From Anthoceros angustus (Eukaryota; Plantae; Anthocerotophyta), in assembly GCA_010909165.1 (NCBI GenBank), contig VJWM01000205.1:248001-312000 (forward strand): a stretch of DNA of 64,000 nucleotides, given 5' to 3'. Position numbers and translations under genes: made by a program. This document shows positions 56,944 to 64,000 of the stretch, in pieces; the first letter of the stretch is position 1, and each line of letters begins with the position of its first letter. The notes under the pieces were generated by a model. The model saw only the letters and a program-made list of their open reading frames with translations, ran no database searches and was not told where the DNA came from.

Positions 56944-58364
56944 GCTCAGCACTGCTGAGTCTCCGCAGCTTGAGGTCCGATGAGCATATTGACCACTTGT
57001 GAGGGGAGCAAAGCTTCCCAAAGGCGGGCGTGCGGGAGACTTGATCCCAGGATGATCGATCGTTTCGAATTGAGACTTTGAGGTATGTTTTTTAGTTCCC
57101 AGGAAAAGATGTGGCCCAAAAAATAGAAGCTTTCTTTCGCTTCCTGCTCCACATCCACTGACCCAGAAAGCAAAAACAATGGATCACCACAGCACCATTG
57201 AACGTCAATCTGAACTTTCCCCCGTCGTATCTCTCGAGCGCGGTTAGAGAACGGCATACGCTTCTGTCCCATCTCTACGGTACGATACGGCAGCAAAAAG
57301 ATGCTGGTACGATGAGCTGACGTGGCGTAGGGACGGAACGCGTTTTGGAGATAGGTAGATGTAGGTGGGACGTGGTAGTGGTAGGTGTTGACCAGTGGTC
57401 ACTATGTATGTTTGCCTGAGCCCCTCCAAGTTTGTGAAGGCCATGTCCATCTCAACTTGGACAATTTTGAGTTTTTCCACTGATTACCGATGAAGATGCC
57501 ACACATTTCTGCAGAATTTTCTTCTCACCAGGTTGAAACCTTCGGAAGTTGCAAAATCTTAGCTCCCATTGCGGGCTGTATTTCGGATTGTGCATGGGTC
57601 GGATGAAGGCAAAGCACATACCATTGCAAAGCCTGTGAATGCACGAGGCAGGGCCCATTACTTGATACCGACAAGTGGACGGGAAAAATGAAAGAGTCCA
57701 CATTGTGAATTATCGGAAAAATAGGCCCGCACCACCTGGGTCATTCTGGAGTTCAGTTTCAGTATGGCTGCGTGCAGATGCAGATGCTAGGTAGTGTAGC
57801 TATCAAGAGGGAGGCATCCTCTCAGCATTGAGATACTTTTTGGAAGCCAATAGCATGGCTGCAAATTCGGCACGATTTGACGATGTGCTCTTTAGGTACA
57901 CCTATAATGTTCTCCTGTCGTTGCTGCTTACAAGAGATGGCCTACAGTGATGGCATTTGGACATGTCTTTCTTGAAAGTCCAGGGAGAAGCTATTTATGT
58001 GTGACAGTCAGCTGGCTCCAGGTGAGCCTGACACAAGGATGAATGCAGCACGTGTACTTGAACAAGGCATCTCTTCGATGCCCAGGACAAAGATATTGTT
58101 CAACTTGGCTTCAAGAGCCCCATGCTTCTCGACCAGGTTCATTGCATATGAAAGTCTCATACTCCGAATCGAGGGGGCTGTTTGCATCAGCTGAAGTTCT
58201 GGCACAGCAAGCTTCAGACCTAAGCACCTAATTAAGAAAGTCGAGAAACATGGTGTAGTGTGTCAGAACTCCAGGCGAACGACAAGCGGTGTCGGGGCTG
58301 CAACAGTGGTCGAAAACGTACCTCCGCGCTGAGCTGTTGTGAGTATACACACGTCGTCTGCATC

Positions 58365-61300
58365 CTACTTCACAGAATAACTTCGAGAGATTCCATGAGA
58401 AACAAAATCGTCTATTGGTGGATGGAGCAGATGATGGCCTGTTACGCTTTGATACGCCATACCCAGTGCCAAAACCTGCAGCCGGAAGATTCGCGTTTTG
58501 GTAATTAAAATCACACTCTCACAACACGTAGAACATGCATTTCCCGTAATGAACGAACCTCGCCATCTTTGAAGGGTGCGCCGTAAATCCCTGCGCTGAC
58601 GATTGTCCGTCTCTGGCTGCCTTCAGGAGGTGCGTCCGGAATGTTCTTCATTCCCGTGGGAAGAACCAGCACTGGCAATCCCACCAAGTTACTCACCGCA
58701 ATTTTCTCCCGGTCAGTCGCGTTCCCGATAATGGCATCAAACTCTGAAATCGATGCGAGCACTTCTTGAGACAGCAAGCCCCGAACTCTCTGAGCATGGA
58801 TGTAGTCCACGGCGGAAATCATGCGGGCACGGCGGGCTGCTACAGGCCAGTCTGCTTGGTCCTCGTACTCGTCATCGAGACCAGCTCTCTGCCAGTGGTC
58901 AAAATGGGAGAGCATGTCGGTCTCCATGATTAAACCAAGCAGTGCGGGAGCTGAGTCGACGCTGTAGGCGAGTTGCAAGGGAACCAGCTTCACTCGCTTG
59001 GCAGCCAGAATGTTCAGCAGCTACACACGCGCACAAGGCCATCCGTCAGATGCAATGCCAAGCAAATATGATGCTTAAGAATGATGCTTGTGGAACGAGA
59101 GGAAGAGATCCGCTGCTGCACCTCGACATCTGCATCCGCCAGGTAGCCGACAGTCAGCCTCGACACGTCGATACCAAAAGGGTCCTTCAGCTTGATATCC
59201 TTTGAGGAGTAGTCGTCTGGATCCTTTCCTCGTATCACGTCCAGAATGATGGCGCAGTCGCTAGCACTTCTACAAAATGGACCTACTTTGACCTGCACGA
59301 ATCAAGAGTCGACATCAGTAGGAAGACGCCTTCAGCATGCAAGATGAGTAGAGTGAGATCTTGTCGGAACTCCTACCAGGCTATCAGAGAGGCTCATTGT
59401 CCCTGATCGTCCGACCATGCCAAAAGTGGGCCTGAAGGCTGTTACTCCAGTGCGGGCTGCAGGGTATACGATTGATCCAGATGTCTCCGACCCGATTGCA
59501 AACGGAACCAGAGCTGCTCCAAGTACCGGAAAGGTAACAGCCGAGTGTCAGGGGAAGGAGTAGGTTTCCAAGGAGCTCACTCACAAACATCAACATCCGG
59601 GTAGTACCTGCGGAGGTGCCTGCAGCAGAGCCAGATGACGATCCTAGAGTAAATTCTGCTATGTTCCATGGATTCCTGGTTCGACCTCCAAACCAGATAT
59701 CGCCGGATGCTAGGGACCCACATGCTAGCTTCGCAATCAGAACTGCACCTGCCGCTTTCAATCTGCAATACAGAAGGTGAGCTGGTGCTCTTGATGACAA
59801 GGAATGAAAGAGCACGAGGAAATGGTGATGAAAGTACTTCTTATAAACCCAAGCTTCTTCATCGATGACTTGGTCTTTGAAGGAAGTCGAACCCCACGTC
59901 GTCTTGTAACCAGGAACAGCTATTGTATCCTTCAACCCATAAGGGATTCCGTGTAGAGGACCTACACAGCAAAAGTTGATGGCAAGCTAGTTGTAGCGTC
60001 TTATACACTTATGAAATGAAGATTGTACTAGAACGTGCCACACCTTGGTATTTTCCATGCTTGATTAAGTCATCGGCTGCATCGGCTTGTTCTTGGGCAA
60101 GTGCTGTCGTGTATGTTATGACCACTTGTAAAGTTGCATCGTACCTTTGAAAAAATGCAATGTTCATTGAATCAAGTGAAGAACCCCTCTCCTGGCAAAC
60201 GACAACCAAGTCGAAGTCCACACCAAACACACCTTATGAGCCGTTCAGTGAAGACCTTCACCAACTCGGCAGATGTTACCTTCCGGTTCTTTACCAAGTA
60301 GGCCAGTTCTGAAACCTGTGACAGCCACACAAGAGAACCAGTTCATAAAATAGGACAGTTTGACGAGTAGCGATGCAAAGGAATCGAACACTACCTTCGA
60401 TGCTTTTCCAGAACTGTGACAAACTAAAATCTAGCATACAAGTTTTGCATGTACAGCTTACAGTCATAAAAGCAAGGTCCTCATCGCTCGCTGGCCGCTT
60501 CACCCCGTAGGTACCTGGGTACTTGAATTTGAGATCGGGGCTGGCGAAGGCCTTCGTGTTCAAACTGGGGTCAAAAGAGAGAACGGACGGGTTCTTCATG
60601 CCTCCATCAGGAAGTCCAACCAGGCTCCTGTGATATCGGTAAATAGGTATGTTCATCGATTGGACGTCCTCCGCCATTTTGCCTCTCTGCAAAGCTAAAA
60701 TGTAATCAGTGATCAGGAACAAAATAGAAAATCTGTATAGTGGGACACCACATTGTGTAGCATGGAAATGGTTATGACTTCAGAGTGGCTGTCCGTTACC
60801 TTTTGATCGTCAAAGACATCGAAGTCTCCCAGCTTAGAGGCTGCAAGAACTGCTGATGAGTTGAATGATACATCAGATGAGAGACCTGTTCTTTGGTTGA
60901 TACTTCCCAGCACGCTTCCATTGATAACGTGAATGACACCATTTGAAGCAAGAAAATAATCAACCACCTTCGCATCTCCAATATACAAGCTCGACAGTAA
61001 GTCGGTCACCTGGAGCAAAGGAAAAACAACTGAATCCATCCGGATGTGCCAGATTACGTCACAATCACAACATAGGAAAACTTAATGGAAGCTTGTTCTC
61101 ACCTGTATGACTATATCACCAAGAGATTGTAGTAGCTGCCCATCAGTCAGGTTCTCTGTCTGAAACATGCCCTTCACGACTGCTTAAAACACATTTGACA
61201 GCGTGTTAAGGACAAACACCTTGGATTGACAGCCATGCACCAGAATAAAAGTCAATACAGACGACAGAGTACCGCAGAAACTTTAGAAACCATGCCATCT

Positions 61301-62059
61301 TTCTCACAGCCAGAAAGGCTGGGAACATTTTCCAACATCTCATTGCGTTTCGTCTCAAGGATGACATTCGAGCAATCCCAAACAACAGGTAACACTTGAG
61401 ACTCCACTTGAAACTCCAAAGGCTTACAATGATTAAGGACAATCGCCTTGAGATTCGTTGCAGTGAGGAGATCAGCGTCCGAGGTGCAAGGAGAAGCTTG
61501 ATAAAAATCGTGAACACATGTGAGGAGAGACTTTCTGAACACCTCATGAAACGCGTCATCTGTAGGAGCGAAGAGGGTGAAATTGGCTCCTCCTCCCAGA
61601 GTAAGATTTTTCAAGGCAGTTCGGTTCAGAGCTGCGTTCAGCAGCGTCTGCGATCCGTGGCGCCATATGTTAGTAAGGCAGGGTTAAAACGAGAAATTGG
61701 AGCAGGTAGAACATACTTACAACTCTGAAGGCTGAAGCTAAGAGCTTGCTTAACAAGTAACCGACCACCAACAGAGCAGAGAACAGGTTCCCAGGAATGC
61801 ACGGGCCAGACGAGACAATTACCAGATTAGGCAGAGAAGCCACAAGCGAGACAACGTCTAAAGCCTTGGCCGGCCCAGGCGGCCCTGCTACCATGACCAG
61901 CTCGAAATACAAAGCAGAGACAAGGAGCACGACCAGAACTCCCTTCACCGATCTGCTGATCGTGCTCCAAGTCTCTGGCTGGAAGGCCAGGCATCCCTGG
62001 AACACAGGAAGTGCAACGAAACTGGCCAAGCAGCCCGGGGCTGCTTCCGGCTCCCTCAT
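58365..62059 (-). CDS. Amidase-signature enzyme (At5g07360-like) with N-terminal TM segment and inserted fasciclin (FAS1) domain; multi-exon. An upstream exon at about 62112-62298 is possible.
   Basis: Amidase: KDTIAVPGYKTTWGS, GGRTRNPWN...GSSSGSAAG, FAIGSETSGSIVYPAAR, VLALGMAYQ...PPIDD. FAS1: NFTLFAPTDDAF and SNGVIHVING. Confidence 0.9.
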
Positions 62060-62949
62060 AGCCCGCAAATTCCGATTCAATAGGCACCCAGAGCTCACAA
62101 CCTGAACTCACCAAACCCATCCAGTGGTGAGGCCGGAACTCCCAGCTTGCAAGCCTGGAAGAGTAATCCAGACTCTGCCAAGCAATACAGCCTGTAGCTG
62201 CTCAGCTGGTCCCGGCCGCAACAGGTGAGAGGTGAGGCTGCTCTGTTCCCGTGAGGTCGCCTGTTGAATCCTTCCGGCGGGTGTACACAATCGGACATGC
62301 TTGCTTCCTCCACTGGAATGCAGTTTGCAAAGCCCAAATTAAGAAACGGGTGCCTGGCCCACGTCCGTCGCCATCTCCTGTGGGGAAGACGAATTCCGAC
62401 TGGATAGCTGACACTTCCCCGTACCACGTCCATGCTGTTGCGTCTCCTGTGACATCATCTCTCTTAGATGTTTTATATACCTCATCCCCCCCATATCCGC
62501 CCCTCATCCCCCCATCCCGTCCGTCACAACCAACTACCCTCCGTTTCTCTTCTTTATTAATCCCTCTTCATTTTTCCTTTTCCTTTCCTTTCCTTTTCTC
62601 CGTTTATTCCACTGCTGATCTTTCTTCTTTTTTTCTAGATACCTTCTAGCTCAAGTCTTTTGTAATCATAACCCTGGTGGACTAAAAAACATCTTAAACG
62701 CTTGGGGAAGGCCACCTGAGGGAGCTAACAATGCATAGCTAATTCTATTTAACAAGCTTAAACCTTTTAAAAGAAAGCCCCACAAGGGATTAGTCCCCTA
62801 TGGAGTGCCGCTTCCGGTTTACATGTGCAAGACATTTCAGTATTCAACATTCAATTGGTCTACTAAACTCATAAATTAATTGAAATTGATGCGATCATAA
62901 GTTAATTAGAATTGATGTGGGGCTGAGAAAAAATAACCGCACGTCTATA

Positions 62950-63300
62950 GGGTTCATGGCCCTAAAGAGCACATAAAAACATCCCATTTTAGTCAAGTCC
63001 AACACCCAACTCTTGTTTTGCCTATAGATAATGACATAGACTGAATTAATTTTCTTGGGATGCGTTATGCACTCCGCGTGACATGGAATTTAGAGTATAT
63101 ATATTATTTTAAATAGAGATATTTTATATCAAATATATATCATAGTATATATATAATATGATATAAATTAGGGTGATATATAGATTAAGGTTATAAAACC
63201 TAAATTAAAACTAATTTTCGATTTTATTTTATTAATAAAAATAATGATTATATCTATTTTATAACTCTTTTTATTCATAAATCCTAATTTTGAAGAATCT
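62950..63300. other. AT-rich low-complexity segment, probably a transposon remnant
   Basis: TA-rich runs, no ORF. Confidence 0.35.
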
Positions 63301-64000
63301 AATCTCACAAATCCGCTGTACTGCTTATCATGGGGCAAATATGACAGCCCTAGATGCTGGATTGCCTGGAGCCGCGAGCCCTAAGAGAGTTTACATGATT
63401 ACACACCTAGACCTAAGTAGTAGGAGACAGTTATTACTAGGTATTTGGGTTTTATTATTTGGTCAAAAGCACATGGGGATATAGCAAACTCAGCGTTGGA
63501 TGCCGAAAAGAGACACGTGACTGACAAGTCACAAGGGGTCGGAAAATGTGTCGAGCACAGAGAGGCATTACGGATGGATGATACCAGCCTACCAGGGAGC
63601 AGGGCAGGCAACGAGGAAAGGCGCAACGTCCACCCTGTGGTCCATGAAAAGACTAAAGAATCGATTGGCGTCTCGGACGTCGCAAAAAGCTGGACGTCTC
63701 TTGCTACCGTCGCTTCGGCACTTTCCCTTGCTCTTGCCTCTCCTTTTGTCAGCCAGCGTACTGAGCCAGCTCCCTCGTCAACCATGTCCCGACCTGCCTT
63801 GAAAGCAATGCGTCGTGCACATTGTTGGAGCTCCGGCTGCCGGTAGAGCAAATGGCTGCACTGCTGTGAGAAGCCTTGCCGTTTTGGTGGTGCTCAACAT
63901 CGTCACGCATTCGGAAATTACTTCTGCACTTCACTCATTCGCATACAGGTGCTGTGCATTGCTGGCGGATTGCCTCCGTCAACATCCACGCTTTCGGCGT

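Follow-up and report, generated by a model that had tools for sequence, protein, structure and literature searches.

A fasciclin-amidase fusion gene of Anthoceros angustus probably belongs to an old green-plant family whose seed-plant members lack the FAS1 domain

Do a fasciclin (FAS1) domain and an amidase belong to one gene in Anthoceros angustus (Anthocerotophyta), and if so, did the combination arise in this lineage or disappear from others? The locus that raises this question lies in a 64,000-nucleotide stretch of A. angustus DNA (GenBank assembly GCA_010909165.1, contig VJWM01000205.1, positions 248,001 to 312,000 of the forward strand), which we call the window and in whose coordinates all positions are given. 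The original prediction, made from the letters of this stretch, was of a membrane-anchored FAS1-amidase fusion, with FAS1 as a putative adhesion or targeting domain that had been either lost in angiosperms or gained in this lineage. We found that one gene and one transcript encode a hydrophobic N terminus, a FAS1 domain, and an amidase. It is highly probable that this gene is an ortholog of an old green-plant FAS1-amidase family that has a secretory N terminus and from which the FAS1 domain was later deleted in seed plants. Direct observation covers the structure of the gene, the splicing of a single mRNA, the identities of the domains, the intact catalytic triad, the orthology, and the phyletic pattern.

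Reading the minus strand of the window from 62700 to 58200, we identified a 13-exon gene with a coding sequence running from 62059 to 58365 (2313 nucleotides, 770 amino acids) in an uninterrupted frame. The start ATG occupies 62059-62057, the TAG stop codon ends at 58365, and all introns are GT..AG. No in-frame ATG occurs upstream of 62059 after a stop codon at about 62099. The parts of the gene are listed here in the direction of transcription; X1, X2, and X6 are contigs from public sequencing runs, which are described below.

62060..62359, minus strand: 5′ untranslated region (UTR), its upper end being that of the first record of spliced contig X1.
61823..62059, minus strand: exon 1 (amino acids 1-79), with a 39-residue N-terminal region, the hydrophobic segment, and the start of FAS1; joint 61823/61647 in X1, X2, and X6.
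61883..61942, minus strand: sole hydrophobic segment by Kyte-Doolittle analysis (amino acids 40-59), followed by PPGPAKA and then Leu66; a signal anchor or cleavable signal peptide.
60899..61864, minus strand: FAS1 domain (amino acid 66 to about 215), spread over exons 1-4; Pfam PF02469 and the family profile.
61428..61647, minus strand: exon 2 (amino acids 80-153), ending with the first base of codon 153.
61103..61179, minus strand: exon 3, with acceptor AG at 61181-61180, placed by the 81-nucleotide stretch at coordinates 758-838 of the first X1 record.
60800..61009, minus strand: exon 4 (amino acids 179-248), with the end of FAS1 and the start of the linker.
60462..60686, minus strand: exon 5 (amino acids 249-323), a conserved linker that by alignment is the N-terminal extension common to seed-plant and bacterial amidases.
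58365..60315, minus strand: exons 6-13, the amidase-signature domain (amino acids 324-770) and stop codon; Pfam PF01425 on exons 8-11, joints in X1, X2, and X6.
60315-60233, minus strand: exon 6.
60144-60044, minus strand: exon 7.
59961-59838, minus strand: exon 8.
59930..59932, minus strand: catalytic Lys395 (GLKD); Lys in 263/263 ungapped alignment rows.
59762-59608, minus strand: exon 9.
59639..59641, minus strand: cis-Ser467 (GSSSGS), aligned to the family column.
59513-59377, minus strand: exon 10.
59473..59475, minus strand: nucleophile Ser491 (ETSGS), aligned to the family column.
59292-59122, minus strand: exon 11.
59290..59292, minus strand: Val524 (GTC), opening exon 11; 263 of 264 relatives have Asp, and sister species read GAC.
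59020-58559, minus strand: exon 12.
58475-58365, minus strand: exon 13.
57887..58364, minus strand: 3′ UTR with a 94-nucleotide intron (58226-58319), from pieces of X1; joint 58225/58320.

We aligned contigs from public sequencing runs to 57800-62700. The first record of X1 (2997 nucleotides) was 100% identical to the window and comprised the 5′ UTR (from 62359), all 13 exons, and the 3′ UTR (to 57887). From it, 12 coding introns and one 94-nucleotide 3′ UTR intron had been removed exactly, at plus-strand CT..AC boundaries that correspond to GT..AG on the gene strand. Because X1 has an 81-nucleotide stretch between exons 2 and 4, the exon 3 acceptor was placed at 61181-61180. A 2950-nucleotide contig of a related organism B (about 95 to 97% identical) was spliced alike, and a genomic contig of the same organism (X21) retained the introns; organism C contributed partial spliced contigs. 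The expectation that FAS1 and amidase share a single transcript was thus borne out by a contig spanning all 13 exons and by its counterpart in organism B.

Could the fusion nevertheless be an artifact, a small FAS1 gene and a neighboring amidase gene having been misread as one? Only prior expectation speaks for this: reading exon chains by eye may run genes together, and a contig assembled from k-mers is not a single molecule. However, in two species the spliced contigs run from exon 4 into exon 5 and beyond without a break in the open frame. Since exact intron removal spans the FAS1/amidase boundary, in frame, in two species, two separate genes are barely tenable. No stop or start codon lies between the FAS1 and amidase parts, and the same domain order recurs in more than 20 independent orthologs from other genomes and transcriptomes. 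We therefore regard an artifact as exceedingly improbable.

Comparison of organisms A and B showed that the FAS1 exons differed by about 3.5% and the amidase exons by about 3.2%, with no indels in exons, and that UTRs and introns were two to four times more different, with many indels. The lower divergence of the exons and their freedom from indels are a rough sign of purifying selection on both the FAS1 and the amidase parts.

The 3′ UTR has a feature of its own. Its GT..AG intron lies 45 nucleotides past the stop codon and was spliced out in X1. The same region has diverged in organism B, for which X2 shows a 191-nucleotide skip with 57 other letters.

Pfam, family-profile, structure, and fold searches were run exon by exon or on orthologs, and the joined 770-residue translation was compared by local alignment, blastp, and tree building. 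Exon 2 alone matched the Pfam Fasciclin family (PF02469; E value of 4.4e-5, 24.1 bits against a cut-off of 22); the FAS1 domain is split over four exons, and the remaining FAS1 exons therefore miss Pfam singly. We built a family FAS1 profile from 18 orthologs, leaving out the window protein. Within the whole 64-kb window, this profile matched exactly three stop-to-stop pieces, corresponding to exons 2 (E value of 9e-25), 3 (9e-6), and 4 (1.5e-17), in profile order. FAS1 motif H1 (NFTLFAPTDDAF, given as TLFAPTDDAF in the FAS1 motif test) lies at 61549-61584 in exon 2, and motif H2 (SNGVIHVING, given as NGVIHVINGSVL in the FAS1 motif test) lies at 60917-60946 in exon 4. The middle motif reads LNHFV, in which the His of the [YF]H-type motif is present and the preceding Tyr/Phe is not. 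Cys123 and Cys133, located between H1 and the His motif, represent the only Cys columns invariant in the 18 orthologs. The H2 Gly is also invariant among these and is kept in the window protein.

The amidase family PF01425 matched exons 8-11, collinear at profile positions 46-244. Exons 8 and 10 scored 28.8 and 40.1 bits, respectively (cut-off, 27), and exons 9 and 11 scored 23.9 and 25.0 bits; full-length orthologs score 170-200 bits. Pfam thus recognizes both predicted domains above cut-off, PF02469 on exon 2 and PF01425 on exons 8 and 10. Taken singly, exons 4, 5, 12, and 13 had no Pfam match and were placed via orthologs, and tblastn of one ortholog (P0152) against the window was collinear. 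Exon 12 had no match among PDB sequences, and the linker exon gave no usable match in a protein atlas search. Lys395, Ser467, and Ser491 align to columns invariant in 263-265 relatives, such that the Ser-cis-Ser-Lys triad is intact, and 62 of the 63 family-invariant columns, the triad among them, are kept in the window protein. The hydrophobic N terminus, the H1 and H2 motifs, and the amidase motifs of the original prediction lie at the coordinates stated there, on the minus strand, and the Lys/Ser/Ser signature was rightly judged to look intact. The enzymatic activity that these residues would confer is a prediction from sequence.

Is the fusion peculiar to Anthoceros? A full HMMER search with exon 12 returned At5g07360-type plant amidases and three cluster representatives with both Fasciclin and Amidase, namely, those from Diphasiastrum, from the green alga [Myrmecia] bisecta, and from one transcript-like contig. 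Word searches with the Diphasiastrum and Myrmecia proteins added fusions from Selaginella, Ceratodon, Calypogeia, the fern Adiantum, Trebouxia, Coccomyxa viridis, and Elliptochloris, as well as several transcriptome proteins. A word search with FAS1 only gave just two proteins, owing to the word index, one of them from Adiantum. Amidase only was found in Ginkgo, in more than 100 angiosperm orthologs, and in relatives from Bacteroidota/Rhodothermota. In line with the original description of the Arabidopsis protein as lacking FAS1, the angiosperm orthologs, including one labeled "like AT5G07360," carry PF01425 only. The family FAS1 core profile matched 22 of 395 fetched relatives, none of which came from seed plants or bacteria.

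By local blastp, the window protein is 56 to 60% identical over 688-722 columns (about 690 amino acids) to nine fusion members from bryophytes, lycophytes, and a fern. Identity varies by region, from 36 to 50% in FAS1 and about 50% in the linker to 63 to 68% in the amidase. In seed-plant proteins, alignment starts only where FAS1 ends (model residue about 225), and a short unconserved stretch takes the place of FAS1.

We built a tree from the linker and amidase columns only, using a quick IQ-TREE run with Shimodaira-Hasegawa-like approximate likelihood ratio test (SH-aLRT) support. Bacteria lay outside, the trebouxiophyte algae formed a grade, and the land plants formed one clade (support, 100), within which ferns (all with FAS1), seed plants (without FAS1), and bryophytes plus lycophytes (with FAS1) made up groups. 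The window protein fell in the bryophyte/lycophyte group (support, 92), with no firm position inside it, on a branch of 0.5 against a median of 0.19. None of the 18 fusion FAS1 domains, which range from algae to ferns, lacks either of the two Cys residues, and this points to a single origin of the fusion. Because the linker-plus-amidase tree follows plant phylogeny, we take FAS1 to be ancestral and lost in seed plants, not gained here, and because Ginkgo also lacks FAS1, the loss is placed in seed plants and not just in angiosperms. To judge from these sequences, then, the fusion predates land plants, every non-seed land-plant group sampled retains it, and FAS1 was removed in seed plants. Of the two histories first proposed, loss holds, in a form wider than angiosperms, and gain in this lineage agrees with neither the tree nor the distribution.

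Some family members depart from the general pattern. Ceratodon purpureus KC19_10G003700 (P0192, 560 amino acids) and P0176 represent a moss-specific duplicate without FAS1 and without the N-terminal hydrophobic segment, to be explained by a truncated gene model or by FAS1 having been lost a second time, independently. Much longer proteins are found in Coccomyxa viridis (P0289, 1188 amino acids) and Carnegiea gigantea (P0165, 1257 amino acids); these lengths may come from merged gene models or from extra domains. Finally, Logan contig L001 (3245 nucleotides; P0049, 769 amino acids) is an intronless, transcript-like FAS1-amidase with 34% identity in exon 12. In the tree it branches deeply, a long branch joining it to the eukaryotic clade at the base.

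The architecture also has a published precedent. PpFAAH8 of Physcomitrella patens (Pp3c4_17250, 743 amino acids) was listed in 2020 as "Amidase, Fascilin," and its fasciclin domain and long N terminus were remarked upon (PMC7033180). Our literature search found no mention of PpFAAH8 beyond that paper. The amidase family that includes AT5G07360 has been placed among genes of bacterial origin (PMC3493653), and AT5G07360 has elsewhere merely been labeled FAAH2 (PMC12586335). The rarity implied by the original prediction did not survive the architecture survey, in which the fusion proved common in non-seed plants and trebouxiophyte algae. Since mosses, liverworts, clubmosses, ferns, and some green algae have the fusion as well and a 2020 paper had pointed it out, the window gene is an ordinary family member. 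Public annotation and one paper already record the FAS1-amidase architecture, to which the window gene adds one more lineage, the hornworts.

Which compartment would such a protein enter? The segment at residues 40-59 reaches Kyte-Doolittle values of up to 2.45 in 19-residue windows, and the protein has no other hydrophobic segment. Arg36 and Lys39 stand on its N-terminal side, and A-K-A comes directly after the hydrophobic stretch, before Leu66. Of the eight N-x-S/T sequons, seven lie within FAS1 or the linker; most orthologs, several seed plants included, share one of the linker sequons. No C-terminal hydrophobic tail or retention motif was found, the last 40 residues being polar. From the positive residues, the sequon placement, and the lack of a C-terminal tail or retention motif, we infer that FAS1 and amidase are luminal or extracellular; topology and glycosylation are thus both predicted features.

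The fate of the hydrophobic segment itself allows for two outcomes. It is quite possible, if somewhat short of probable, that the protein is a type II membrane-anchored ectoenzyme in which residues 40-59 stay uncleaved and hold FAS1 and amidase at the membrane surface. The strongly hydrophobic stretch has 20 residues and does not begin until residue 40, and the transmembrane-like N-terminal stretch of seed-plant orthologs is also set back from the start. However, the N termini of bryophyte, lycophyte, and fern orthologs have short hydrophobic cores and resemble ordinary cleavable signal peptides, small residues (A-K-A) stand right after the segment in the window protein, and FAS1 begins only 6 residues beyond it.

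Residue 524 sets the window protein apart. The window and the identical contig X1 have Val here (GTC), but among 264 aligned relatives, which range from bacteria to plants, 263 have Asp. The codon is GAC in the contigs of organisms B and C, with X2 and X6 showing a "T" between 59290 and 59376. One might conclude that the window copy is a decaying or functionally shifted enzyme under relaxed constraint, transcribed yet yielding no working amidase. The replacement of an Asp that even the sister species keep is consistent with this idea, as is the long terminal branch of the window protein. The open reading frame is nevertheless intact across 770 codons, the triad and the other 62 invariant columns are kept, and the exons are far less diverged from organism B than are the introns and UTRs and contain no indels. 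We consider decay rather unlikely. Val524 could serve as a ready-made activity variant supplied by nature.

How might FAS1 and amidase be arranged? The protein modeled in both of our structure predictions was the Diphasiastrum ortholog rather than the window protein. The full-length AlphaFold model (predicted local distance difference test score [pLDDT], 88.5; predicted template modeling score [pTM], 0.85) is confident except for the N-terminal 46 residues and contains no disordered linker; Foldseek matched it with generic amidase-signature enzymes only. FAS1 folded alone (pLDDT, 87.6) best matched the FAS1 domains of TGFBIp, periostin, stabilin-2, and fasciclin I (E values of 1e-8 to 1e-6) and also matched MPT70 and FAS1-type carotenoid-binding AstaP proteins.

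The last of these matches brings up another role for FAS1, that of a holder of hydrophobic ligands like AstaP of microalgae, which, docked on the amidase, would capture a lipophilic amide, for instance an N-acyl amide, or present it to the enzyme. Were that so, the label "FAAH-like" would be partly apt. The ortholog FAS1 does match AstaP (8c18, 22iy) at an E value of about 4e-7, beside adhesion-type FAS1 domains; the whole-chain model is compact; and the moss ortholog PpFAAH8 was filed among FAAH paralogs (PMC7033180). Yet TGFBIp and periostin FAS1 are matched at least as well as AstaP, the amidase sequence stands closer to GatA, peptide amidase, and AtzE than to FAAH, and PpFAAH8 itself has less than 26% identity with FAAH in the table of the same paper. 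A ligand-holding FAS1 appears unlikely.

Returning to the secreted FAS1-amidase that we favor, we envisage its action as follows. The protein would consist of a secretory signal (signal peptide or anchor), a FAS1 domain with a family-specific two-Cys loop, a linker, and a bacterial-type amidase-signature hydrolase. The hydrophobic N terminus would direct the chain into the endoplasmic reticulum, leaving FAS1, linker, and amidase all luminal or extracellular and the sequons of FAS1 and linker open to glycosylation. Ser491, activated via Ser467 and Lys395, would cleave the amide bond of the substrate. FAS1 would serve at the N terminus as a fixed binding module, its target being a wall or glycan partner or else the substrate. 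The fusion would be older than land plants, and seed plants would have dropped FAS1 while retaining signal, linker, and amidase. A more far-reaching version, which we think unlikely though worth stating, makes FAS1, kept together with its disulfide-type Cys loop from trebouxiophyte algae to ferns, a built-in component with which an ancient secreted green-plant amidase captures its substrate or binds a partner, instead of a loosely attached adhesion tag; its clean deletion at the origin of seed plants would then mark a change of substrate or compartment for At5g07360.

Several points weigh against this account. Val524 replaces an otherwise invariant Asp, and so this copy could be impaired. The 39-residue N-terminal region is unusually long for a cleaved signal peptide. 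The apparent docking of FAS1 on the amidase comes solely from the pTM and pLDDT of the ortholog model. The run that gave the spliced contig was taken to be RNA only by a guess from its record; it is the removal of 13 introns that shows it. Many NCBIfam amidase models matched, all far below cut-off, and since no equivalog cut-off was reached, no substrate name is transferable. Our literature search likewise found no substrate for any member of the subfamily, At5g07360 included.

Two features lie outside the transcript. A purine-rich low-complexity tract (GA on the gene strand) spans 62561-62650, about 200 to 300 nucleotides upstream of where the transcript contig begins; within it, 62561-62605 was masked as repeats when contigs were aligned. 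An AT-rich island (62950-63400; GC about 0.25-0.26) separates the upstream region of the gene from a GC-rich stretch that begins at about 63550. No tandem repeats were found in 57000-64000.

The family has no bearing on any long-standing open question. With a history that extends to green algae and ends in its removal from seed plants, the fusion does, however, provide a simple handle on At5g07360-type function, in that FAS1-bearing and FAS1-less forms are comparable in Physcomitrium or Marchantia.

How, then, does the window protein compare with known systems? Like fasciclin-like arabinogalactan proteins (FLAs), it has a FAS1 domain with H1 and H2 and is predicted to enter the secretory pathway. 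Unlike them, it lacks a C-terminal glycosylphosphatidylinositol signal, ending in a polar amidase tail, and its FAS1 domain is joined to an enzyme and contains a Cys loop. We rejected membership of the FLAs on three counts: inspection by eye of the N-terminal 345 residues revealed no Pro/hydroxyproline-rich arabinogalactan-protein stretch, the C-terminal 40 residues are polar, and the sole hydrophobic segment is N-terminal.

Bacterial amidase-signature enzymes of Bacteroidota/Rhodothermota (about 545-580 amino acids) share the fold and the Ser-cis-Ser-Lys triad but have no FAS1. They are 36 to 40% identical to an algal fusion (P0032) over linker and amidase, and bacterial relatives align over 61 to 72% of an 819-residue fusion protein. 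Amidase-signature relatives of solved structure include GatA, the peptide amidase Pam (1m21/1m22), AtzE-type enzymes, and 5ewq. FAAH (AtFAAH, 6dii; rat FAAH, 1mt5) belongs to the same superfamily and has the same triad, but its sequence similarity is much weaker than that of GatA or Pam. The amidase of ortholog P0152 matched GatA, peptide amidase, and AtzE with E values of 1e-41 to 1e-32, versus 1e-16 to 1e-12 for AtFAAH and rat FAAH, and this far better match to GatA and peptide amidase led us to reject membership of FAAH. The window protein, unlike FAAH, probably has a luminal or extracellular topology.

Seed-plant proteins of the At5g07360 type are collinear over linker and amidase, 57 to 62% identical from residue about 225, and have the same triad. 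They also share a hydrophobic N terminus and a sequon at the start of the linker; they differ in having no FAS1, with Pfam recognizing PF01425 only and the family FAS1 profile finding no match.

The closest counterparts are the PpFAAH8-type proteins, the orthologous status of PpFAAH8 itself resting on its paper's table and on the Ceratodon moss protein. These proteins (Ceratodon KC19_1G142400, annotated as "FAS1 domain-containing protein"; Selaginella LOC9644225; Diphasiastrum O6H91_04G083000; and that of Calypogeia fissa) have the same signal-FAS1-linker-amidase order, the same two-Cys FAS1 loop, and the same triad. They are 729-752 amino acids long, against 770 in the window protein, which differs from them in its longer N-terminal region (39 amino acids), its longer terminal branch, and its Val in place of Asp at residue 524.

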